From IMG/VR virus record IMGVR_UViG_3300049215_000771, positions 434,001-498,000 of that record: DNA of 64,000 bases. One strand, given 5' to 3'. The notes beneath the pieces were generated by a model. It was given only the letters and a program-made list of their open reading frames with translations. It did no database searches and had not been told where the DNA came from. The translations under genes and the position numbers were made by a program. The stretch's first letter is position 1. Each line of letters opens with the position of its first letter. Below are positions 16,169-61,772 of this stretch, one piece after another.

Positions 16169-17644
16169 TCACGGTAGGCCCAATTCCTTGCGGGCAACTT
16201 TGTCAATCGGCAAAGGAGCGCCCATCACAGCCGTTCGTCCGCTCGTCGTCGTGGGGAAGGCGATAACTTCCTTCATCGAGTCCTCCTTGCACGCCAACAT
16301 CACCAGTCGGTCAATACCGAGAGCAATCCCTGCGTGTGGTGGAGTGCCGTAGTCGAAGGCTTCCAGCATATGCCCCACGCTGCGTTCGATCTCCGGTTGA
16401 GAATATCCCATTACCTTGTACGTTGCTTCCAGCATCGCCCTGGTATGTGCCCGAACGCTACCTGACCCGATCTCCATGCCGTTGCACACCAGGTCGTACT
16501 GATGAGCAACGATGTCACCCACGTTCTGACCCTGGAGTAGCCAATCACTGTGTTCTTCCAGCGGGGCCGAAAACGGGTTGTGCATGAAGGTCCACGAGGA
16601 CTTGCTGTCCAGCTTATCAACATCTTCCTTCGCCGGCTTGAACATTGGGAAGCGGACGATCCAGCAAAACATCAATGCGCCGGCGTCCTTCTGTGCCTGC
16701 GTCCTGATGTCGGGCTTGTCCGTGCCCCACCGATTCATCGCTTCTTCGTAGGTGAAGATCGGGAAGCTGTTGCCGATGCCGCCGAGATAGGGATAGCGTT
16801 TTAACTGCCCGCCTTCATAGGTCCACGGCTCGTAGAGTTCTTTTTCTTTCTCGTAGTCCCAAATCTTCAGCTTGTAGAAAATAGAACGAACAACTTCCGT
16901 AGCTGTGTGCAACACGCTACTTTCGGTGCCGAAAGCCATTTCCAGGTCAACCTGGGTAAACTCGAAGCCCCGGTCGGAACGAGGAGTCTCGTCCCTGAAG
17001 CACCGAGCAATCTGGTAGTAGGCCGGCACGCCACCCGTCATCAACAATTGCTTGTACTGCTGCGGGCTTTGTGGCAGGGCATAGAACTCGTTGTGGTAGA
17101 GCCGAGAAGGAACAACGAAGTCCCGTGCCCCTTCCTTTGTGGGAGCCGCCAAGATTGGCGTCTCGATCTCCAGAAAACCTCGCCCGTCCAGACACTCACG
17201 GATCGCCTGAAGGGTCTTGGCACGAACCCGAAGGTTGCGTGCCATACGCTTGCGGCGAAGGTCGATGTATCTGTAGCGAAGGCGCTTGTCGATGTCGGTT
17301 TCGTATCCGTCCGACTGAACTGTGATCGGCAGCGGCTTCGTGGCGTTGAGAACTTCGACGTTCCCGACCACGAACTCCACCTTGCCCGTGTACATATCGG
17401 GATTTTCCATGTGTTCAGGGCGGGCTTTCACCTGGCCATGAAACCTCACAACATCTTCGAGATTCAACCCGGCAAGGGTTTTGTTGCGACCGACACACTG
17501 CACGATGTAACCTTCACCATCCCGAAGGTCAATGAAGGTCATTTTGCCGTGGTCACGCTTGGCGTCCACCCACCCCTGGATGGAAAAAAGAGTCGAAGAC
17601 CCCGCCAAACGGACTGTGGACTCAATGCTTGTGTGTTGAGACAT
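16169..17644 (-). CDS. aspS: Aspartyl-tRNA synthetase, compact (GAD domain absent), non-discriminating signature
   Basis: OB fold GWV..KRDHG..FIDLRD; motif 2 QIARCFRDE; GTDKPDIR joined directly to FCWIVRFPMF; motif 3 GIDRL. Start MSQH at 17644. Confidence 0.93.
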   Translation of the reverse strand: MSQHTSIESTVRLAGSSTLFSIQGWVDAKRDHGKMTFIDLRDGEGYIVQCVGRNKTLAGLNLEDVVRFHGQVKARPEHMENPDMYTGKVEFVVGNVEVLNATKPLPITVQSDGYETDIDKRLRYRYIDLRRKRMARNLRVRAKTLQAIRECLDGRGFLEIETPILAAPTKEGARDFVVPSRLYHNEFYALPQSPQQYKQLLMTGGVPAYYQIARCFRDETPRSDRGFEFTQVDLEMAFGTESSVLHTATEVVRSIFYKLKIWDYEKEKELYEPWTYEGGQLKRYPYLGGIGNSFPIFTYEEAMNRWGTDKPDIRTQAQKDAGALMFCWIVRFPMFKPAKEDVDKLDSKSSWTFMHNPFSAPLEEHSDWLLQGQNVGDIVAHQYDLVCNGMEIGSGSVRAHTRAMLEATYKVMGYSQPEIERSVGHMLEAFDYGTPPHAGIALGIDRLVMLACKEDSMKEVIAFPTTTSGRTAVMGAPLPIDKVARKELGLP

Positions 17645-17897
17645 CGTATTCCTCGGTTTCCAAAGGTTCTGTATGTGTTGCCAAAGGCGGCGCAGGGTAG
17701 TGTTCGCACGGAGAAGGCCACCACACAAGTAGCGGCCCCATGACGTTGACTTCCCACCTTCCCCATCGCCCGCCCAAGGCTCGTCTGTAACCACGATACT
17801 CCCAAAAACGACTAGGTTCGCTCGCCTTGCCACGGAGTTTCTTCCAAAGCAAGATCAGGGACCACATGATTGTACTCCGTTTGTTTGAGGTTGTAAA

Positions 17898-22463: not shown

Positions 22464-23003
22464 ATGCTTGACGAATGGTTCAAATGCGCAGTGTGCGGAT
22501 CGAAAGAAGCACCCATCATGAGCATGGGGTACATTTCCCAATGCTATTGTCGAGATTGCGCCGACAACAAAAAAGAAGATTGCAACGCAGCCTTCAAGAA
22601 GGTCCACGACGAAGCTGTGCTTGAAGAAGCCTTTCGCCCCAAAATCAAACACGATGAAATTGACGTGAGAGATGATTACTTTCAGTACATCGTACAAAAC
22701 AAACAAGAACCAGAACTGGAGATGTGCTTCAGGAGAATTGCCGAGCAGGTGTACCTTCTAAAAACTACCACCAAGAAAGATTGGCATAACAACTGGCGCT
22801 GGATTCCTTTCATCGAAAACGTCGATAAAGGGACGTGGCAAGAAGTCCCCAAAGATTTTGTGGAGGCGGCGATCCCGTATTGTTACGACAGGTTGAAAAC
22901 ATACGATGCAGGCAGGGCCACAGCGAAAGATTACTTCACTGCGGCCTGCTGCGGTTTGTATGAGTATGCAAAACTGCACAACTGGCGAGATTGGGCGTAC
23001 TAA
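22464..23003 (+). CDS. Hypothetical protein with an N-terminal CxxC...CxxC
   Basis: CAVC...CRDC zinc-finger-like pattern. Confidence 0.5.
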   Translation: MLDEWFKCAVCGSKEAPIMSMGYISQCYCRDCADNKKEDCNAAFKKVHDEAVLEEAFRPKIKHDEIDVRDDYFQYIVQNKQEPELEMCFRRIAEQVYLLKTTTKKDWHNNWRWIPFIENVDKGTWQEVPKDFVEAAIPYCYDRLKTYDAGRATAKDYFTAACCGLYEYAKLHNWRDWAY

Positions 23004-24421
23004 TACAACTTCCGGTCTTCCGCCTCAAGAATCTTGCCCAAGTTGGGAAAGAAAATTTCCCACCACTCCGTCATCTCGTGCATGATGTCCTGGAGAGTGT
23101 CATAGATTGGGGTTTTCTTGCACTCCTCAATCCACTTGTCACAGTAGGTGTGCCAGAAGAAGTCCGTGAGGGTCTTCAAACCCAGCGGCCAGTTCAGGTC
23201 GTGTTCGATGTAGGTTTGTAATCTCCCAGCGGTCTTGATCCACTCCAGGTAGTATTCCTGGTTCTCTCCCCCAGGACAACCTGGCTCCCAATCCTCCAGC
23301 CCCCACTTCCCATTGCCGTGGATGAACCTGTAGGCATTGACCAGCTTGTTGAGCAGGGCTTTGCCTTTCTTCATGACGGCTTCATCACAGCGGGTGTCCG
23401 TGCCGACCTGGTTGCACGCCGCCCAATAACGAACACCCTCCATGCCGTACTTCTCAACGTAGACGTGCGGCTCGACGAAGTTGCCCGCCGTTTTGCTGAT
23501 CTTGTGGCCGTGCTTGTCCAGGGCGTGGCCGCTGATAATGATTTTCTTCCACGGAACCTGATCGCTGTGATAGAGACTTTTGACGATGGTGAAGAATGCC
23601 CACGTCCTGATGATGTCGTGCGCCTGGAACCTGGCGTCGAAGATCGGGGGATGAAGGGTAGGAATCTTCGTGTGTGCCGCCCACGTCATCTGCGGCGACA
23701 AGCTGGAAGTAAACCAGGTGTCAAAAACGATGTTGTCGGGTTCCCCCGGAATGTGGATGCCGTAGTTACGCTCACGGGAAATAGACCAATCCATCGTGAG
23801 GCCATCCAGCCAGCGATGCAGCCGCTCCTGAAAGACCTTGGGATGCCACTGGATCAGGTCGATAGCCTGCCTGAGACGGTCCAGGTGGTCACGGATGTTG
23901 ATGAACCAGCCCTCGCCTGTCCGTAGCTCGACTTTCTCACCAGAACGCTCGTAGCGGCCTTCCTCGTCGATCTCGGCCTGAGAAACGGAGACACGGGTTT
24001 TGGGGCACCAGAAATAGTCCCTGACGGCTTTGTAGGCGTAGCCCTTCTTGACCAGATCGTGGAACGACATCTCGGCCAAGGCGATGGCGTGGCGGTCATA
24101 GGTGTGGTAGTGATGCTTGCTCCAGCCCATGCCGATTTGTTGGAACAAGTCGGAGTACATCTTCGACGTATTCTCGGCAAACCTGACGATACCGGGCGTA
24201 TCGAAGATTTTGTCCTTCTGTGCCAACTTCTCGGTCGGCAGGCCGTTGCAATCAAAACAGAAAGGGTACAGAAGGGGGTCTTCCTTCTGGCCATCTTCGG
24301 TGAGATGGAAACGCTTGGCCCTGGCAACAAAGTCCATGTGGCAGTACGAGAAAACATGGCCCATATGCAACAGGCCAGAGATCGTCGGCGGCGGAACGTC
24401 GATAAGGTATTTTGGGTCCAT
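23000..24421 (-). CDS. valS: Valyl-tRNA synthetase-like, minimal (CP1 editing domain and C-terminal coiled coil absent)
   Basis: PPPTISGLLHMGH (HIGH), DCNGLPTE, DWSISR, QAHDIIRTW and KISKTAGN (KMSKS). Start MDPK at 24421. Confidence 0.85.
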   Translation of the reverse strand: MDPKYLIDVPPPTISGLLHMGHVFSYCHMDFVARAKRFHLTEDGQKEDPLLYPFCFDCNGLPTEKLAQKDKIFDTPGIVRFAENTSKMYSDLFQQIGMGWSKHHYHTYDRHAIALAEMSFHDLVKKGYAYKAVRDYFWCPKTRVSVSQAEIDEEGRYERSGEKVELRTGEGWFINIRDHLDRLRQAIDLIQWHPKVFQERLHRWLDGLTMDWSISRERNYGIHIPGEPDNIVFDTWFTSSLSPQMTWAAHTKIPTLHPPIFDARFQAHDIIRTWAFFTIVKSLYHSDQVPWKKIIISGHALDKHGHKISKTAGNFVEPHVYVEKYGMEGVRYWAACNQVGTDTRCDEAVMKKGKALLNKLVNAYRFIHGNGKWGLEDWEPGCPGGENQEYYLEWIKTAGRLQTYIEHDLNWPLGLKTLTDFFWHTYCDKWIEECKKTPIYDTLQDIMHEMTEWWEIFFPNLGKILEAEDRKLY

Positions 24422-24604
24422 GCCAGATGATACTACGATTTTGTGAGTTTGTAAGGTCGCAATTGTTTTTCGGTGAGCGGTATCCACGGCAAATCGGGAC
24501 GATTTTCCATGCACCCGCCACAAGGACGAGAAACGTCCTTGTGGCAGGGATGGACTCTATCTTCCGGGAGGAAACCCACGTCCTTGGCGTATCTCCAAGG
24601 ACAT

Positions 24605-28072: not shown

Positions 28073-28558
28073 CTACGTCCCCTCAATCTCCCGAATGTAG
28101 TGGCGAGCCATTTCAATGCCGCTGGGGTTGGGAATCATTGCCGCCTTCTGTCCCAGGAGGCAGGCGGCGATGAGGGCCGCATCCAAAGGCGGAACCGCCG
28201 CAAAGGTCGGCCCAGGCCCGGTGATCCTCACCATGCTGATATGATACCGATGAGGCGTGCAGTAGGTATCTTTCGACATCTCCACCGAGATGATGCAGTG
28301 GTCATCACGGCGACGGTCGATCACCCGGCACAAACCAACCTCAACCTGCCACATGCCGTTTCGAGGGCATTTGTCGGGATTCTCCACCTGCCATCGACTG
28401 CGCTCCACTGCTTCGCATTCGGTGTTGGAGTACACCGGGCTTTCTTCAGCCGGGTACTTGTCCGCAGCTTCCCTCATCTCGACGCCCATCTGAATCATGG
28501 CGGCGATGGTGTAGGGAACGAAATCATCAGGACTTCGCTTCTTCGTTTCCATAGTCAT
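28073..28558 (-). CDS. Hypothetical protein
   Basis: Start trimmed to MTMETKK to limit overlap with thrS. Confidence 0.5.
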   Translation of the reverse strand: MTMETKKRSPDDFVPYTIAAMIQMGVEMREAADKYPAEESPVYSNTECEAVERSRWQVENPDKCPRNGMWQVEVGLCRVIDRRRDDHCIISVEMSKDTYCTPHRYHISMVRITGPGPTFAAVPPLDAALIAACLLGQKAAMIPNPSGIEMARHYIREIEGT

Positions 28559-29753
28559 ACCCGAAATCGAACTCGTTGAGGTAAGCTGCCTCGGCGAAGA
28601 AATCTCGCTTCGGCAAGGTCTTGTTAGTTCCGTCCCGCTCTCGAACAGTGACGGTTTCGGCTTCCACTTCCCGGTCCCCGATGATGAGCATTCGGGGGAT
28701 GTATTTCTCCTGAGCGATGGCAACCATCTGCGCCACCCGTTTGCCGGAAAGATCAACCATCGGACGAAGTTTCCAGTTCTCCAGCTTCACCTTCAGATCG
28801 AAACAGTAGCCCCTGGCCTTGTCAGTAACAGGCAGGATGGCGTACTGAATGGGGGCGAGCCACACAGGAAGGTGCCCCTGGTAGTGTTCGAGCAGGATGC
28901 CGATGAACCGCTCGAAGCTGCCATAAATGGCACGGTGTACAACCACAGGGGTTTTGCGGGCGTTGTCATGGTCAGTGTACTCCAAACCGAACCGAATGGG
29001 AAGCTGGAAATCCAACTGAATCGTTGCGGTCTGCCATTCCCGGCCTTGGCTGTCTTTCACGAAGAAGTCGATCTTGGGGCCGTAGAATGCCCCTCCACGG
29101 GGGTCTTCGGTGTAATTGGCGTAAGAACCCTGGAGCGAGGCCCGAAGATCGTCTTCAGCCTTGTCCCAGGTCGCCACTTCGCCCATGAAGTTCACCGGCC
29201 TGGTGGACAGCACGGCCCGGAGTTCCATGCCCAGCTTCCAATAGACACGCTGGACCATGACACAAAGCATGGTGATTTCTTTGTCGATTTGATCGGGAGC
29301 GAGGAAGATGTGAGCGTCGTCCTGGCAGAAGGAGCGACAGCGAGTGAGGCCGCTGAGAGCGCCGGAAACCTCGTCACGATGCAGAACACCTTGGTCGGCG
29401 ATGCGGAGGGGAAGTTCTTCGATGGAGCGAGCGCCTTTGGCCTTGTAGATTTCCATGTGGCCGGGGCAGTTCATTGGTTTCGGGATCAACAGGACATCTT
29501 CATCTTTGCCGTGGACCCCGAACATATTCTCTTTGTAGTGTTCCCAATGCCCGGAGATTTCGTACAACTCACGCTTCCACAGGATCGGAGTGCGTACTTC
29601 CTGGTAGTTCCATTGCTTCTGGATGGCCCGAATCTTGTCCTGGAGGATGGTGTAAACGATGTTGCCGTTGGGAAGCCAGATGGGGCAGCCGGGGGCCAGG
29701 TCGGAGAACATGAACAGGTCCATCTCACGACCGATTTCACGATGATCTTTCAT
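28527..29753 (-). CDS. thrS: Threonyl-tRNA synthetase lacking N1/N2 (editing) domains
   Basis: Begins at DHREIG; KPMNCPGH, HRDE.SGAL.GLTR.R.F.QDDAHIF, GGAFYGPKID, IHRA-type VVHRAIYGSFERF and an anticodon-binding domain. Confidence 0.95.
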   Translation of the reverse strand: MKDHREIGREMDLFMFSDLAPGCPIWLPNGNIVYTILQDKIRAIQKQWNYQEVRTPILWKRELYEISGHWEHYKENMFGVHGKDEDVLLIPKPMNCPGHMEIYKAKGARSIEELPLRIADQGVLHRDEVSGALSGLTRCRSFCQDDAHIFLAPDQIDKEITMLCVMVQRVYWKLGMELRAVLSTRPVNFMGEVATWDKAEDDLRASLQGSYANYTEDPRGGAFYGPKIDFFVKDSQGREWQTATIQLDFQLPIRFGLEYTDHDNARKTPVVVHRAIYGSFERFIGILLEHYQGHLPVWLAPIQYAILPVTDKARGYCFDLKVKLENWKLRPMVDLSGKRVAQMVAIAQEKYIPRMLIIGDREVEAETVTVRERDGTNKTLPKRDFFAEAAYLNEFDFGYDYGNEEAKS

Positions 29754-35954: not shown

Positions 35955-37100
35955 TCACTTGCCATATTTATGTCTGCTCCCGTAAACATGGGGCACAAAC
36001 CGAGAAAGATTGCCGGTGATGATGGAGTCGTCTTCTCGGATGCCGACGCCACAAGCCCATCCGTTGATGATCCAGCTTCCAATGCAGGGGTGCTTGCCAT
36101 CGAAGTTGGGCAATTCCCAAATCTGCTGGTAGATGCCGGGTCCGTCGTATGGTCCCTCAGTTTTCAGGTACAACTTGCCATGCTCGAAAATCTGAATGTT
36201 CGCTCCCTCCCGGCTGAAAATCGGCTTCTTGACGTAGTTGCCGTCAGCGGGTGGGTCGAAAGTTGTACGAAGCAGGTTCGGATGGTCAGGGAACAACTCC
36301 CAAAGGACAGGAAGGATCGCCTTGTTGGAAAGGATGGCTTTCCACGGCGCTTCCAGCCAATTCGTAGTTCGCTCCAGGACCATCGGGCCAAACTGCTCCC
36401 GTTGCATCCATTCCCAGGGATATAACTTGAAGCAGTTGGTGATTTCGTTTTCGTCCAGGTCAGTGAAAACCCGGCGTTCGGGATGCCAGCCGATGTTCTC
36501 AACGTCGATGTAAGCCGTCTCCCAGCCCGCTTGCGTGGCGACATCACGGAGATAGTTGACGTTCATGTAGTCTTCGACGTGGCCGGCAAGGGCGGCGAAG
36601 TACATGATTCCAGGGCGTTGAGTCTTGACGGCTTTCCAGGCTTCGATCAGCCGCTCGTGAATGCTGTTGAACTGGTTCCTGGTGGGGAATTTGTCGTTCA
36701 ACCAAAACCACTGGCCCACGGCGGCTTCCAGCAACCCGGTTGGAGTATCTGCGTTGTACTCCAACATCTTCGGCTCGTAAGACCCATTGAACACAAGATC
36801 GAACCGACCGTAGATGGTGTGTTCGTCGTTCTCCCAGGAGTCCCGAATGTACTGGCGAAACTCACGAGGAATGAGGAACTGATCGAAACGGTCTTCGTCG
36901 ATGACGTGCTGAATCGCCTCCAGGCAGATACGATTCAACTCGTAAGTTGCGGCTTCAAGCTGGTCCACTTCCTGTGGCGTGAACTCGTAGTAAACACTCT
37001 CGTCCCAATAAGGCACGCCGTCTACCGTGTGGTAGTACATGCCCTGGGATTCGACTGTTTTCTGCCAGTCGGGACGAACATCCGTTGTGTGCCGTTGCAT
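35955..37100 (-). CDS. Glutathionylspermidine-synthase-like ATP-grasp protein (YgiC/YjfC type)
   Basis: YWDESVYY, YGRFD, KMLEYNADTPT, KLYPWEW, EAPWKAILSNK, VKKPIFSREG and IGSW...G.GIRED motifs. Confidence 0.92.
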   Translation of the reverse strand: MQRHTTDVRPDWQKTVESQGMYYHTVDGVPYWDESVYYEFTPQEVDQLEAATYELNRICLEAIQHVIDEDRFDQFLIPREFRQYIRDSWENDEHTIYGRFDLVFNGSYEPKMLEYNADTPTGLLEAAVGQWFWLNDKFPTRNQFNSIHERLIEAWKAVKTQRPGIMYFAALAGHVEDYMNVNYLRDVATQAGWETAYIDVENIGWHPERRVFTDLDENEITNCFKLYPWEWMQREQFGPMVLERTTNWLEAPWKAILSNKAILPVLWELFPDHPNLLRTTFDPPADGNYVKKPIFSREGANIQIFEHGKLYLKTEGPYDGPGIYQQIWELPNFDGKHPCIGSWIINGWACGVGIREDDSIITGNLSRFVPHVYGSRHKYGK

Positions 37101-45960: not shown

Positions 45961-46041
45961 TGACCGGGGAGGGAGTCGAACCCTCACGCCTTTCGGCACA
46001 GCGTTCTAAGCGCTGCGTGGCTGCCATTACACCACCCGGCC
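45961..46041 (-). tRNA. tRNA-Leu(TAG)
   Basis: CAGCG-CTTAGAA-CGCTG, V arm, A73. Confidence 0.92.
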
Positions 46042-46473
46042 ATATTGACTATGACAATTAGGACATCTGAATTCCAAATTTCCCAACCTGTTGTCAAGCC
46101 AGTTCCCATTTTTGTGATTGACTTCCAACACAATCGGAAGTCCGTTCCAAGTGTCTCTGACAGGACAACAGGCACACTTGTACTCCACGCCACTTTCAAT
46201 CATCGCCCGCCGTAATCGGGCGGCTGCTTCCCTTGATCCACTCTCACGCAACACCAGGATGTCTTCTGCATCCTTCCGGTTCAATCCGGGCTGCAAGAAA
46301 TCGGTCGGCTTTTTGAAATGCGAAACATCAATCTTATACTCAGCCAATCGCCGTTTGATATGACTGAAGTTTCCACCAGCCTCCCTAAGCCCTAGTTTTC
46401 TGATTACATCGGCGACCGATTCACTATCAGAAACAATCGCCTGGAGCATGTCACGAGTATATTTGATTCTCAT
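46027..46473 (-). mobile_element. Free-standing HNH endonuclease whose ORF ends inside tRNA-Leu(TAG)
   Basis: CACC...LEVNHKNGNWLDNRLGNLEFRCPNCH; own TACAAT 5 nt before the ATG. Confidence 0.85.
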
Positions 46474-46938: not shown

Positions 46939-48141
46939 TCATTTCTTCAACACCACCGAAGAACCATCGCTCCGATCCCGAATCTCACAACCCAGGTCGA
47001 TGATCCTTCTTTTCAGGGCATCGGCCCCAGCCCAATTTCGCTGCCGCCTGCATTCCTCTCGGAGTTTGGCAAGCTGGATGGCGTCGTCGGGAGCATCCTC
47101 ATCCGAGAACATCTGGAAACCGAGTAATTCGGCTTGCTCCAGGCTGGGATTCACGAAAGTCGCTGCGATGGCTTCCGAAGTATTCAGGTTGGCGTCCATC
47201 GCCTTGGCGAAATCTTCCGAAACTCCATGTTCTGGTGCCGACTTCAGCCGATTCCTCAAAGCCTTCCACTGTTGCGCCGAAGTCCCATCCAACAACCCTT
47301 CAACGGATAAAGGTTTGGCATAACTGGCCGAGAGAATCCAGAAGCGAATCACGTTGGGGTCCGTGCCATTCGCCCGATAGTCCCGGATGTTGACGGCGTT
47401 CCCCTCGGATTTTCCCATCCTCCTGTCGCCGATCTGAACCATCCCATTGTGGAGCCAGATGTCCGCCAAGGGCGATCCGGCATGAAGGCATTCGGACTGA
47501 GCGATCTCATTCTCGTGATGCGGAAACTTCAAATCGTCGCCGCCCACATGAATATCCACCGTGAACCCAATGGTCCTTTCAATCATGATGGAGCATTCAA
47601 GATGCCAACCAGGTCGCCCCTTGGGGAATTCAGACTCATTGGCCTTCGGCCCCTTCCACAAAACGAAATCTTCCGCCGTTTTCCGACGTGAAAGTTTCCC
47701 ATATCCAGGGAACGTCTTCGTTTTGAAGCGAATGTCGCCATCTTTGTGGTAAGCATGGCCACTTTCGACAAGCGCCGTAGCTGCAACCTTCATCGGGATC
47801 ATGTAGTCCGTCACACGGGGGTACAAGTCCGCCTTCTGGACGTTCAGCCAGCCCATGTCATTGAAATAGTCGTCGATGAAGCGGTCAGCCAGTTCTTTGC
47901 TGGTCACGCCCTCCTTTGCCGCCCGATCCACGATTTTGTCGTCCACGTCCGTAAAATTCTGAACGTGGTAGACCTTCTGCCGGCGTTTGAGCCAGCGTTT
48001 CAGCACGTCCCACACAACATAGCTCCTGGCGTGTCCCAGGTGGCAGTAGTCGTAGACCGTTACACCACAAGCGTACATAGTGATCGGGCGGTCACTAGGG
48101 ACTTCTTTTTCACGCCGGGTTAGGGAGTCGTGCAGTTTCAT
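46939..48141 (-). CDS. cysS: Cysteinyl-tRNA synthetase (compact)
   Basis: YACGVTVYDYCHLGHARS, NFTDVDDKI, GRPGWHLECS, FPHHENE and MGKSEGN motifs; start MKLHD at 48141. Confidence 0.95.
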   Translation of the reverse strand: MKLHDSLTRREKEVPSDRPITMYACGVTVYDYCHLGHARSYVVWDVLKRWLKRRQKVYHVQNFTDVDDKIVDRAAKEGVTSKELADRFIDDYFNDMGWLNVQKADLYPRVTDYMIPMKVAATALVESGHAYHKDGDIRFKTKTFPGYGKLSRRKTAEDFVLWKGPKANESEFPKGRPGWHLECSIMIERTIGFTVDIHVGGDDLKFPHHENEIAQSECLHAGSPLADIWLHNGMVQIGDRRMGKSEGNAVNIRDYRANGTDPNVIRFWILSASYAKPLSVEGLLDGTSAQQWKALRNRLKSAPEHGVSEDFAKAMDANLNTSEAIAATFVNPSLEQAELLGFQMFSDEDAPDDAIQLAKLREECRRQRNWAGADALKRRIIDLGCEIRDRSDGSSVVLKK

Positions 48142-48177
48142 GCGCCCATAGTACCCCGATTTAGAAGAAGTGTAAAG

Positions 48178-48256
48178 TAGCCTCGGTGGGAGTCGAACCC
48201 ACATCCTTTCGGCACCGGGTTTAAGCCGGCTGCGTATACCGTTCCGCCACGAGGCC
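48178..48256 (-). tRNA. tRNA-Leu(TAA)
   Basis: GCCGG-CTTAAAC-CCGGT, V arm, A73. Confidence 0.9.
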
Positions 48257-48301: not shown

Positions 48302-49369
48302 TTATCTAATCTCGACCTTCAATTCCTTCATCCGGTCACGAAGCTGTTGCTGACGGGCGTTGATTTCCTCGTTCGTCAGCACCCGATCCATCGACCTGTA
48401 GGTGATGCGGTAGCAATGAGATTCCCGCTCACCTTTTTTGAAAGAATCCAGCAGCTTGACACTTTCAACCAGATCGCCGTGTAGATCACGAACAATCTGG
48501 TAGAAATCGTTCTCGCTGTAGCCAGCCGGAATCCAGAACGCCATGTCTTTGACACACGGCGGCTGGACCGAGAATGGCTTGAATTTAGAGTCCAGGTCTT
48601 TGAACTGGTTGAGGAAGCGTTCGTCCTCACTCCAGAACAATCGGATGTCCGGGATGTCGAAAACAAGCATTGCCAGCCGCTCCAGGCCAACACCGAACGC
48701 CCAGCCCTGGGTGTAGTCACTGTAGTTGTCACCAAGAGGCCCAAGGGCTTCACAGCGCTTGATAACATCGGGATGGACGATGCCACAACCCGCTACTTCC
48801 AGCCACTCGCCATTCCATTCGATCTCCAACTCCCAAGAAGGGTTCGTGAACGGGAAGTAGGAGTCCACGAATCTGTAGTTCAACTGCCGGTTATGTGGGC
48901 TGTACGGGATGTTGAGAACTCGTTCTATCATGTCGAACATATGTTCCTTCAACATCCTCTCAAGGTCCAATGTCTGATATTTCGCCTTGTGAAAAAGGCC
49001 CACGCCTTCAACCTGGTGGAACACCGGGTAATGCGTGCGATCAATGGTGTCTCGCCGGTACACGTCGCCACAGACCAGGAACTTCATGTGTCCCTTGTTG
49101 ATGAGCATGTGCTGATGGGCGCTGGTATGCGTCCTCAGAACGTGCTTCTCGTCAACGTAGTAGGTGTCAGAAGGCCGGCGAGAGGGATGGTCGGGTGGAA
49201 TCAGCAGATGGTCGAAGTTATCTTCCACTGTCACCACCGGCCCGAACGTCTCGTAGATTTCGTGGCCGGGGAAGGCCATATAGATAGCCTTCTTGACAAT
49301 TTCGAGCGGGTGTCGTTCCTTCAGATGGAGGTTACGCCCCATTTTTTCTTTGATGCTCGGCGGGATCAT
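48302..49369 (-). CDS. pheS: Monomeric (mitochondrial-type) phenylalanyl-tRNA synthetase
   Basis: HPSR..SDTYY, LRTHTSAHQ, YRRD.ID.THYPVFHQ, YFPFTNPS and GWAFGVGLERL motifs, fused to a C-terminal FDX-ACB (KDMAFW...SHCYRITYRS..R.LTNEEIN). Confidence 0.93.
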   Translation of the reverse strand: MIPPSIKEKMGRNLHLKERHPLEIVKKAIYMAFPGHEIYETFGPVVTVEDNFDHLLIPPDHPSRRPSDTYYVDEKHVLRTHTSAHQHMLINKGHMKFLVCGDVYRRDTIDRTHYPVFHQVEGVGLFHKAKYQTLDLERMLKEHMFDMIERVLNIPYSPHNRQLNYRFVDSYFPFTNPSWELEIEWNGEWLEVAGCGIVHPDVIKRCEALGPLGDNYSDYTQGWAFGVGLERLAMLVFDIPDIRLFWSEDERFLNQFKDLDSKFKPFSVQPPCVKDMAFWIPAGYSENDFYQIVRDLHGDLVESVKLLDSFKKGERESHCYRITYRSMDRVLTNEEINARQQQLRDRMKELKVEIR

Positions 49370-49536
49370 GGCTTACCGTCCTGATCGACCCAAATCATGC
49401 GGAAGTTTTTGCCGCTCCACTCCATGTGGTAGCCTTGGCTTTTCATGTAGGCGTAGTGCATGGCGGCAATGCCAAAAACCACGGCGAACAACAAAACATA
49501 CCAACGAATTTCTTTCCACATATTTCACCCTTTCAG

Positions 49537-49627
49537 CGGAAGAGAAGGGAATTGAACCCTTGCCGGACAATTAAGCCGGGCCAGTTTTCGAGACTGGTGC
49601 AGCAATCACAACATCTGCCTCTCTTCC
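49537..49627 (-). tRNA. tRNA-Ser(CGA)
   Basis: CCAGT-CTCGAAA-ACTGG, V arm, G73. Confidence 0.9.
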
Positions 49628-49629
49628 TT

Positions 49630-50207
49630 GGAGCCGCACTACGACCATCGTGGCCCCCACGCCTATCGTAGTTTTCGCAACCGGGCCTGAGAACGGCTTT
49701 TGACGGCCAACACAGGACTTAACTGGTGCTGGATGCGGCATAAATAGGGACCGTGCTGCGACCATCATAGTCCTCGACGAATGTATCGCAACTTTTCCAG
49801 CCGGACTTACCGAACGTGTTTTCGTTCTTGCCCCCGGCGCTCCAGGCGAAGGTCTTTTTCAACCATAGGAGTCGGTAAGGCAGCTTGAACTATTCACTCG
49901 GATACTGTTTGGATACGGCCCTCGTCGAACAGTCCTCCCAGGCTTGTAGGATTTCTCGTTCGGGCAAGGTTGTGCGCACAACCTTGTCGGGTCCAAAGCG
50001 ACTCAGCCAGTGTGCTATTACGCCAAAAGGATTGCACACCAGGTAGCCTAACCTGGGTGCGTTTACTCCCACTCTTTGAATGGTGGCTGCCTCTAAGCCA
50101 ACATCCTGGCTATCTCCGTTTAGCTTTGGCGGCGAGTTTATACAGCCCGCCGTGATATATCCCGATTCCTTCATCCTGGTGGATGCCCAACCATTTCGAT
50201 GAAGGAA
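49630..50207 (-). ncRNA. Candidate large structured RNA between two tRNAs
   Basis: No convincing ORF. Many hairpins: TTCCTTCATC/GATGAAGGAA, a 22-nt palindrome at 49965-49986, and ACTACGA/TCGTAGT enclosing CGTGG/CCACG. Contains the 23S-like domain. Confidence 0.6.
49998..50115 (-). ncRNA. 23S rRNA GTPase-associated-centre (H42-H44)-like domain with a 47-nt hairpin insertion
   Basis: AGATAGCCAGGATGTTGGCTTAGAGGCAGCCACCATTCAAAGAGT-[47 nt]-GCGTAATAGCACACTGGCTGAGTCG aligns with recalled bacterial 23S nt ~1046-1115. Confidence 0.85.
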
Positions 50208-55678: not shown

Positions 55679-55755
55679 TGCCCAGGGTGGGACTCGAACC
55701 CACAAGACCCTCGTTCTGAGCGAGAGATGTCTGCCTATTTTTGCATCACCTGGGC
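55679..55755 (-). tRNA. tRNA-Leu(CAG) with a short variable loop
   Basis: TCTCG-CTCAGAA-CGAGG; variable region GTCTT; A73. Confidence 0.85.
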
Positions 55756-55870: not shown

Positions 55871-57052
<1,182 letters not shown>

Positions 57053-57735: not shown

Positions 57736-57826
57736 TTGGCAAGGTGGGATTCGATACCCACACGGTAGATTCGTCAACCTACCAACCCCCTCTAGCGGGG
57801 GCTGCGTCTTCTTCCGCCACTTGCCA
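57736..57826 (-). tRNA. tRNA-like RNA with an aberrant anticodon loop (GCTAGA) and 8-nt T loop
   Basis: TGGCAAG/CTTGCCA, A73; CCCCC-GCTAGA-GGGGG; 8-bp V arm; GTGGG-TATCGAAT-CCCAC. Confidence 0.6.
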
Positions 57827-60717: not shown

Positions 60718-60799
60718 TGCCTCCCCAGGGGATTGAACCCTAACCTTCTGCTTTTCAGGCAGATGTGCAGACCAAATGGAACCACTACACCAGAGAGGC
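60718..60799 (-). tRNA. tRNA-Phe(GAA) with an enlarged D loop
   Basis: TCTGC-CTGAAAA-GCAGA; D region GTGTAGTGGTTCCATTTGGTCTGCAC. Confidence 0.75.
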
Positions 60800-61632: not shown

Positions 61633-61698
61633 AGATTTCGCCATTTGCTCCGCTGTTGATGGCATTGATCGACTCATCATCCATCCTTGCTCTACCAG

Positions 61699-61772
61699 TG
61701 CCCAGGGTCGGACTTGAACCGACGACCTTCTGCTCTTCAGGCAGACGCTACTACCAACTGAGCTACCTGGGC
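61699..61772 (-). tRNA. tRNA-Phe(GAA)
   Basis: Canonical cloverleaf; TCTGC-CTGAAGA-GCAGA. Confidence 0.93.

Follow-up and report, generated by a model that had tools for sequence, protein, structure and literature searches.

A phenylalanyl-tRNA synthetase (PheRS) of the single-chain type known from organelles (PheRS-M; human FARS2, yeast MSF1) is encoded in the genome of a contractile-tailed megaphage. The gene lies within a 64,000-nucleotide stretch of DNA (the window, whose coordinates are used below), corresponding to positions 434001–498000 of the 532,729-bp virus record IMGVR_UViG_3300049215_000771. It is likely to encode a working, editing-free PheRS of minimal architecture that serves a phage-encoded translation module. 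The gene and its two domains are positioned as follows.

48302–49369, minus strand: coding sequence of the single-chain PheRS (PheRS-M type), 355 amino acids plus stop codon
48602–49336, minus strand: class II PheS-type catalytic domain, residues 12–256 (Pfam tRNA-synt_2d, PF01409, E = 2.7e-52)
48305–48571, minus strand: FDX-ACB ferredoxin-fold anticodon-binding domain, residues 267–355 (Pfam PF03147, E = 2.3e-16)

The open reading frame (ORF) begins with ATG and is uninterrupted, with zero internal stop codons under translation table 11, the only table used; it needs no recoding. Its start is backed by homologues beginning at the same MIP.SIK sequence. An earlier note, made from the letters of the window, had described a 355-residue fusion of a catalytic and an anticodon-binding domain, and both domains are present in the intact frame. 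The second is homologous to B8, the C-terminal domain of bacterial PheT, and matches positions 689–798 of the PheT model. The only NCBIfam model passed by the protein is TIGR00469 (pheS_mito), with 385.7 bits against a cutoff of 258.35, whereas the bacterial pheS model TIGR00468 gives 167 bits, below its cutoff of 237, in a match that begins at model position 68. When all PDB sequences were searched, the top matches were human mitochondrial PheRS (approximately 318 bits, E ~1e-93), and bacterial PheS α-chains reached at most 142 bits, over the core only. Motif 2 (YRRD..D..HYPVFHQ.EG), the segment FPFTNPS, the GCG triplet and motif 3 (GWAFGVGLERLA) are intact; motif 2, the FPFT strand of the phenylalanine pocket, GCG and motif 3 (GWAFGVGLER) are invariant or nearly so throughout the family alignment.

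An AlphaFold model of the protein, calculated with a 26-sequence alignment (pLDDT 90.8, pTM 0.87), superposes on the PheRS-M structure 3CMQ over both domains, with a TMq of 0.89 and 41% identity in the structural alignment, and on bacterial PheS α over the core only (TMq approximately 0.55). Like PheRS-M (3CMQ, 3TUP), the phage enzyme is a two-domain single chain with no editing module, and it has the same motif 2, motif 3 and phenylalanine-pocket motifs as human FARS2; it differs from the human enzyme in being approximately 50 residues shorter, in missing part of the insertion that follows motif 2 and in having no targeting peptide. A small insertion at residues ~205–220, modelled with low confidence, is shared in the family alignment only by a relative of 92% identity. 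The relationship to bacterial PheS/PheT is confined to a homologous core (31–36% identity) and to B8: the phage protein is one chain, without the N-terminal arm of the α-subunit, without any part of the β-subunit except B8 and without an editing domain. No editing site is therefore expected, because there is no β-subunit. Loss of editing has been ascribed to mitochondrial PheRS (Roy et al. 2005, as cited in PMC4558845). The chain carries no N-terminal extension, and in this respect it does not resemble an organelle-targeted protein; it is a new, non-organellar member of the known PheRS-M family.

A search of the whole 532.7-kb genome with the PheT model TIGR00472 found no β-subunit, the same search being positive in 14 of 14 reference genomes. 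The sole substantial match to this model in the genome is the C-terminal domain of the phage PheRS itself, the other match being one of 18 bits to the N-terminal region of PheT. Together with the pheS_mito assignment and the superposition on 3CMQ, this upholds the proposal that the enzyme is of the organellar type and not an (αβ)2 PheRS. Its gene is under strong purifying selection: the ratio of nonsynonymous to synonymous substitution rates (dN/dS) is 0.06 relative to a homologue with 92% protein and 86% nucleotide identity; that homologue, found in another dataset, lies on a 90-kb contig with conserved synteny, beside a fragment of a cysteinyl-tRNA synthetase (CysRS) gene.

Three tRNA-Phe candidates occur in the genome.

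61698–61772, minus strand: canonical tRNA-Phe(GAA) (ARAGORN; Rfam, 67.8 bits)
about 60726–60791, minus strand: aberrant tRNA-Phe-like element (Rfam, 32.1 bits; rejected by ARAGORN)
genome position 89409–89493, outside the window: third tRNA-Phe-like gene, 85 nt

The canonical gene, 12 kb from the PheRS gene, has the G1–C72 pair, A73 and the anticodon G34-A35-A36, and judging by these positions its product is the probable substrate of the phage PheRS. G1–C72, A73 and the GAA anticodon are the identity elements of yeast and human monomeric PheRS, and the monomeric enzyme also charges bacterial tRNA-Phe (PMC4394434, PMC9976931). In the aberrant element the GAA anticodon loop nearly matches that of the canonical copy, and G1–C72 and A73 are present; its D-loop is oversized. 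Of the two tRNA-Phe species that had been proposed for charging assays, one therefore stands as a canonical gene in the window and the other does not.

The PheRS gene forms part of a larger set of translation genes, with 56 tRNA genes predicted by ARAGORN genome-wide, 14 of them in the window, and the following protein-coding members.

16169–17833, minus strand: aspartyl-tRNA synthetase (AspRS; NF001750, 522.7 bits, above cutoff)
23000–24523, minus strand: class I aminoacyl-tRNA synthetase (aaRS) resembling valyl-tRNA synthetase (ValRS), 507 amino acids (NF009687, 355 bits in three stretches, below cutoff)
28527–29753, minus strand: threonyl-tRNA synthetase (ThrRS), 408 amino acids (TIGR00418, 452.7 bits, above cutoff)
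46939–48141, minus strand: CysRS (PF01406, E = 7.4e-91)
55871–57052, minus strand: elongation factor Tu (EF-Tu), in the same translation gene cluster (Pfam GTP_EFTU, D2 and D3)

The ThrRS covers positions 171–549 of the 565 in its profile, leaving the N-terminal editing region absent, and the ValRS-like protein skips approximately model positions 215–450; going by these model coordinates, the phage aaRS set appears to be trimmed of editing modules. Such a module is in keeping with the complements of aaRS genes in huge phages and giant viruses. In huge phages these complements comprise tRNAs, elongation factors and as many as 15 aaRS genes, with a proposed role in charging phage tRNAs (Al-Shayeb et al. 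2020, PMC7162821).

Motifs of the same type as those of FARS2 and canonical PheS, strong purifying selection and a matching tRNA-Phe argue that the gene encodes a working PheRS. We infer aminoacylation activity, a monomeric state and the timing and purpose of its action during infection. In the proposed mechanism, the phage would express the enzyme alongside its own tRNAs, trimmed aaRS genes and EF-Tu; the class II core would activate phenylalanine with ATP and transfer it to the 3′ end of tRNA-Phe, and the C-terminal ferredoxin-fold domain would read the GAA anticodon. Phage protein synthesis could thereby continue to draw on Phe-tRNA-Phe if the supply from the host were limiting, damaged or shut off. 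The gene itself would come from an old, virus-associated pool of PheRS-M genes rather than from a recent capture from a eukaryote. Spread of this type among mobile genomes may be explained by its compactness, since one gene of approximately 1 kb would replace two genes of approximately 3.4 kb.

The same scaffold could also have been turned to another reaction. SrmL (NF051887, 'PheS-related mystery ligase') has the same single-chain layout as the phage enzyme and, through its Bacteroidota members, belongs to the same crown clade in the trees described below; an SrmL-like ligase might supply, for example, an aminoacyl group used in resistance or in modification outside the ribosome. The phage PheRS scores 244.1 bits on this model, and the Bacteroidota proteins of the crown clade pass its cutoff of 300 (312–330 bits) in genomes that also contain a full PheT (4 of 4 tested). 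In Pedobacter caeni (L062, 3689–9733) genes for a hexapeptide acyltransferase and a free aminoacyl-tRNA-editing-domain protein come after SrmL, and GNAT acetyltransferases and an AraC regulator are encoded at the flanks, which suggests a non-housekeeping role for the Pedobacter protein. A strong SrmL is also encoded by the huge phage LR745206.1 (634,780 bp, uncultured; L139, 1495–2574), with 423 bits and 23% identity to the PheRS studied here; huge phages carry both PheRS-M and divergent SrmL. The pocket of that protein is changed, with HYYT in place of FPFT and GLAMG in place of GWAFG. The phage PheRS, in contrast, falls under the SrmL cutoff and well over that of pheS_mito, retains the FPFT, GWAFG and HYPVFHQ segments altered in strong SrmL, retains its anticodon-binding domain, and has tRNA, aaRS and EF-Tu genes rather than acyltransferases as neighbours. 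A role of the SrmL kind is accordingly held to be unlikely.

Several observations weigh against a working phage PheRS. Besides the score on the SrmL model, these include the status of the Bacteroidota relatives as extra paralogues beside acyltransferases. The need for a phage-encoded PheRS is also tied to no particular host feature, the sole hint of a host being the EF-Tu, whose only named relatives, at 75–77% identity, are from Gemmataceae (Planctomycetota); this similarity possibly gives a weak indication of the host. In addition, no contig of the RNA libraries covers the PheRS ORF, the only exact one, of 217 nt, lying upstream at 49736–49952; these libraries are moss/plant metatranscriptomes, two runs of which are probably one dataset filed twice, and their contigs cannot show expression level.

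The placing of the gene in a phage was borne out by the rest of the record, which has a CheckV completeness of 100% and, at more than 200 kb and with terminase and tail genes, is that of a huge tailed phage. The terminase large subunit is encoded at 317 kb (PF17289 at cutoff; phrog_2, E = 2.7e-44) and a tail sheath at 411 kb (68.7 bits) on the same contig, and a tail-fibre protein (phrog_863) is encoded within the window, as are SbcC/SbcD, ribonucleotide reductase, CTP synthase, a helicase and many ORFs without family matches. The IMG/VR label 'provirus' could be taken to mean that the region is cellular, for example host sequence beside a provirus that was trimmed wrongly, or the genome of a reduced symbiont, in which case the PheRS would be bacterial. 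Its richness in tRNA and translation genes would suit such an origin, as would the identical EF-Tu found on a 673,178-bp contig, an identity that also raises the possibility of a larger genome from which the 532.7-kb record was trimmed. The tail fibre, SbcCD, ribonucleotide reductase and family-less ORFs share the window with the PheRS gene, however, the sheath and terminase share its contig, and the syntenic relative, like other carriers, comes from a phage record with a related terminase, so that a cellular origin of the region is very improbable.

The closest database proteins to the phage PheRS are metagenome proteins of 329–368 amino acids with 55–92% identity, followed by eukaryotic organellar PheRS at approximately 50%. 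The inspected genomic contexts of the nearest relatives are phage-like, with dense small ORFs lacking family matches, and include one 518.8-kb record with direct terminal repeats. Comparison of the locus with deposited phages by megablast gave no match, and a scan of viral contigs with the single protein found no homologue, whereas an alignment-based scan of IMG/VR identified 42 loci. Examination of 32 of the records, many of which are 200–536 kb long, revealed no capsid of nucleocytoplasmic large DNA viruses, a weak negative since the search had no positive control. Sheath-domain matches are present in seven viral records carrying PheRS-M, three of them above the family cutoff, and homologues of the terminase of our phage, with 30–46% identity, in five of these records. 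Nine further IMG/VR records stood outside the capsid search, three of them GVMAG-named and one 1.47 Mb in length; on the basis of names, size and clustering in the tree, these four, together with L030, L033 and L035, are taken as giant viruses. One record (L042) has a PheRS identical to that of GVMAG L039 and was left out of the reduced tree. Among 50,697 deposited phage records the only full-length single-chain match was the strong SrmL of LR745206.1, and the viral structure library BFVD held no entry with a PheRS-M-like fold.

Prokaryotes were surveyed with one genome per species, the 80 best matches being considered. Full-length single-chain homologues were found in the cultured Bacteroidota Sphingobacterium, Pedobacter, Elizabethkingia, Myroides and Chryseobacterium, and also in Patescibacteria, Chitinispirillaceae and a few odd contigs of metagenome-assembled genomes (MAGs); none among these 80 was alpha-proteobacterial or cyanobacterial. 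Three Patescibacteria genomes of 0.6–0.8 Mb (L075, L074 and L077) contain the single-chain enzyme, and PheT was not found in them. Subject to the incompleteness of MAGs, it is probably their sole PheRS, which indicates that the type can act as the only housekeeping PheRS outside organelles. Two actinobacterial MAGs, L082 (a Lapillicoccus chromosome) and L055 (Acidimicrobiaceae), have a single-chain PheRS that falls inside the eukaryote clade, that of L082 being sister to the fungus Blumeria with a support of 100, which indicates contamination or recent transfer. The enzyme type thus has a wide distribution among huge phages, giant viruses, Bacteroidota and Patescibacteria, with at least 32 phage-like virus records encoding it. 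The label 'organelle-type' holds for the architecture of the phage enzyme and fails as a statement of where such enzymes are confined. Reviews treat monomeric PheRS solely as a mitochondrial or organellar enzyme (PMC4394434, PMC9976931, PMC4558845), and a literature search, which is not proof of absence, found no description of a phage or bacterial PheRS-M and no mention of 'SrmL' in the ten papers ranked highest.

Two phylogenies, a quick tree of 131 rows and a careful tree of 95 rows (LG+C20+F+G4 with PMSF; supports given as UFBoot/SH-aLRT), agree on the main points; the careful tree was built without L082 and L055. The single-chain enzymes all group together, separate from eight canonical PheS sequences (100/99 in the careful tree, 100 in the tree of 131 rows), which makes the fusion a common one rather than an independent one; the outcome that would have spoken against the earlier note, a phage enzyme nested among ordinary PheS with a fusion of its own, was not seen. 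Within this clade the Patescibacteria/Chitinispirillaceae group branches first (100/99). The C-terminal domains score 75–92 bits on the PheT model in the Patescibacteria-type enzymes, 57 in Chitinispirillaceae and 48 in the phage, an order that fits this early branching. The remaining sequences form a crown (93/98) on a long stem, in which the Bacteroidota SrmL proteins (100/98) separate first in the careful tree, with 77/88 for the rest; a group of giant viruses and phages (97/95) follows, and then a second phage clade. The group containing our phage is sister (82/89) to a clade (98/95) made up of the phage L014 and the eukaryotes. The eukaryote clade itself (99/96) comprises opisthokonts, plants and green algae, stramenopiles, rhizarians, cryptophytes and discobans.

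The phage PheRS stands outside the eukaryotes, in a five-member clade supported at 100/100, itself within a 16-row clade supported at 95 in the quick tree. This position bears on a further explanation, according to which the gene was recently captured from a eukaryote, such as a moss or protist in the sample, or entered the assembly as eukaryotic contamination or as a chimera. Moss metagenomes are the source of the DNA, and the identity of approximately 50% extends to many eukaryotic organellar PheRS. The phage sequence nevertheless groups with phage and metagenome sequences, its nearest relatives (55–92% identity) reside on phage-like contigs, the gene has neither introns nor a transit-peptide extension, and its GC content is uniform with that of its flanks. 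Assembly artefact is opposed by two runs: in X1, possibly the source sample, a single 148.8-kb contig contains the whole stretch, and X3, which derives from a different sample, has exact pieces of it. A recent eukaryotic source thus appears extremely unlikely: the phage gene is not such a capture, and the phage lineages diverge outside the eukaryotic crown. A working phage PheRS is preferred, and each of the three alternatives, an SrmL-like ligase, a cellular region and a eukaryotic capture or contaminant, is less likely.

The phage L014 has a 322.5-kb genome with sheath-like ORFs and a terminase 35% identical to that of our phage (E = 2e-67), and phage helicase and repair genes adjoin its PheRS gene; it is a tailed phage. 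Two sequence signatures follow the grouping of this phage with our phage and the eukaryotes. RRD in motif 2 and the GCG triplet are found in the whole eukaryote clade, in L014 and in most of the clade of our phage, and RKD is found in the Patescibacteria group (with one RND), in Bacteroidota and in phage clade B, all three having GAG, GSG or, in L026, GGG instead of GCG. These signatures fit the grouping; each is a single site, prone to homoplasy.

An approximately unbiased (AU) test was applied to the alternative in which the eukaryotes lie outside all other crown sequences. This topology is 6.3 log-likelihood units worse and is not rejected (p = 0.185), and nesting of the eukaryotes within the phages was for this reason not accepted as a firm result. 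Transfer between the viral or bacterial pool and the eukaryotic stem may have run in either direction. The enzyme does bear on the origin of the organellar PheRS, as had been proposed, with the best tree nesting the eukaryotes among phages and the AU test allowing the alternative.

The organellar PheRS, that is, the FARS2/MSF1 lineage in all sampled supergroups, may tentatively be regarded as having been acquired from the gene pool of huge phages before the last eukaryotic common ancestor, an origin that we consider possible but rather doubtful. It is suggested by the careful tree, in which the eukaryotes are joined first by L014 and then by the group of our phage, by the shared RRD and GCG signatures, and by the lack of an alpha-proteobacterial or cyanobacterial homologue among the 80 best genome matches. 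It is opposed by the AU result, by the short backbone branches of the PheRS tree and by the disagreement at depth between the terminase and PheRS trees. Were the organellar enzyme of phage origin, the fusion would have arisen earlier, in bacteria, and the Patescibacteria-type enzymes would be a surviving early branch. Precedents exist in mitochondrial polymerases of phage-like character, that for RNA and, among opisthokonts, that for DNA (summarized in PMC4558845); a jumbo phage is likewise sister to eukaryotic PheRS-M in the best tree, although for PheRS-M the AU result allows either direction.

A six-taxon terminase tree agrees with the PheRS tree for our phage and L007 alone, and co-divergence of PheRS with the phage backbone was dropped as an explanation on this ground. 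L025 and L026 are sisters in the terminase tree (100/99) and yet belong to different PheRS clades. This mismatch points to movement of the gene among phages or to unreliable deep nodes.

The phage gene provides an intact, selected, presumably monomeric PheRS in a megaphage, of a type that many huge phages and giant viruses share, and makes the origin of the organellar enzyme testable phylogenetically with concrete non-eukaryotic sister candidates. It exemplifies the favouring of minimal, editing-free synthetases by viruses, the ThrRS and ValRS-like protein of the same phage also appearing trimmed, and it supplies compact natural PheRS/tRNA-Phe pairs for biochemical study. If true, a phage origin of organellar PheRS would mean that phage ancestry reaches beyond the RNA and DNA polymerases into the translation machinery of organelles.

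The PheRS gene is closely framed by a small ORF and tRNA genes.

49366–49521, minus strand: small upstream ORF, 51 amino acids, hydrophobic, its stop codon overlapping the PheRS start (ATGA)
49537–49627, minus strand: tRNA-like gene immediately upstream of PheRS, 91 nt, long-arm type (Rfam, 42.3 bits, E = 1.9e-7)
48177–48256, minus strand: tRNA-Leu(UAA), immediately downstream of PheRS (ARAGORN; Rfam, 54.9 bits)

An AGGA sequence is located approximately 10 nt ahead of the PheRS ATG, and the overlap of the two frames makes translational coupling of the 51-residue ORF and PheRS conceivable. The long-arm tRNA-like gene does not appear in the standard ARAGORN listing. The methionine at 48141 is likely to be the true start of the adjacent CysRS, as the longer ORF would run into the tRNA-Leu gene; the TIGR00435 alignment begins at residue 40 of that ORF. 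Adjacency of PheRS and CysRS is retained on the contig of the 92% relative. An ORF weakly resembling an HNH endonuclease (46027–46473, minus strand; E = 0.0012) lies between tRNA-Leu(UAG) and CysRS, and its 3′ end overlaps the annotated span of that tRNA.

A near copy of part of bacterial 23S rRNA occupies positions 50001–50119 on the minus strand, between tRNA-Leu(GAG) and the PheRS gene. It matches Rfam model positions 1083–1154 (33 bits, E = 3e-8), which we take to be the L11-binding helices of the GTPase-associated centre, and contains a 55-nt insertion. Such an element could be an rRNA mimic or decoy, or a regulatory element. The RNA contig at 49736–49952 is situated just downstream of it on the minus strand and folds no better than shuffled sequences (z = −0.34).

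Further unusual features were noted elsewhere in the genome. Suppressor-type tRNAs, three with CUA and one with UCA anticodons, are predicted in the window (57736–57826, minus strand) and in the genome (C1:121393–121540 and C1:80837–80930), and suggest possible stop-codon recoding in part of it. ARAGORN also reports, outside the window, two tRNA-like genes with four-base anticodons (cttg and aagg; C1:13184–13278 and C1:55504–55586). An Rfam tRNA-like gene at 55679–55755 on the minus strand (40.7 bits), missed by the standard ARAGORN run, is returned in the relaxed mode as a poorly paired tRNA-Leu(CAG). A protein encoded at 35955–37100, minus strand, resembles glutathionylspermidine synthase (148.8 bits against the C-terminal portion of the model for the bifunctional enzyme) and represents an unusual auxiliary gene for a phage.

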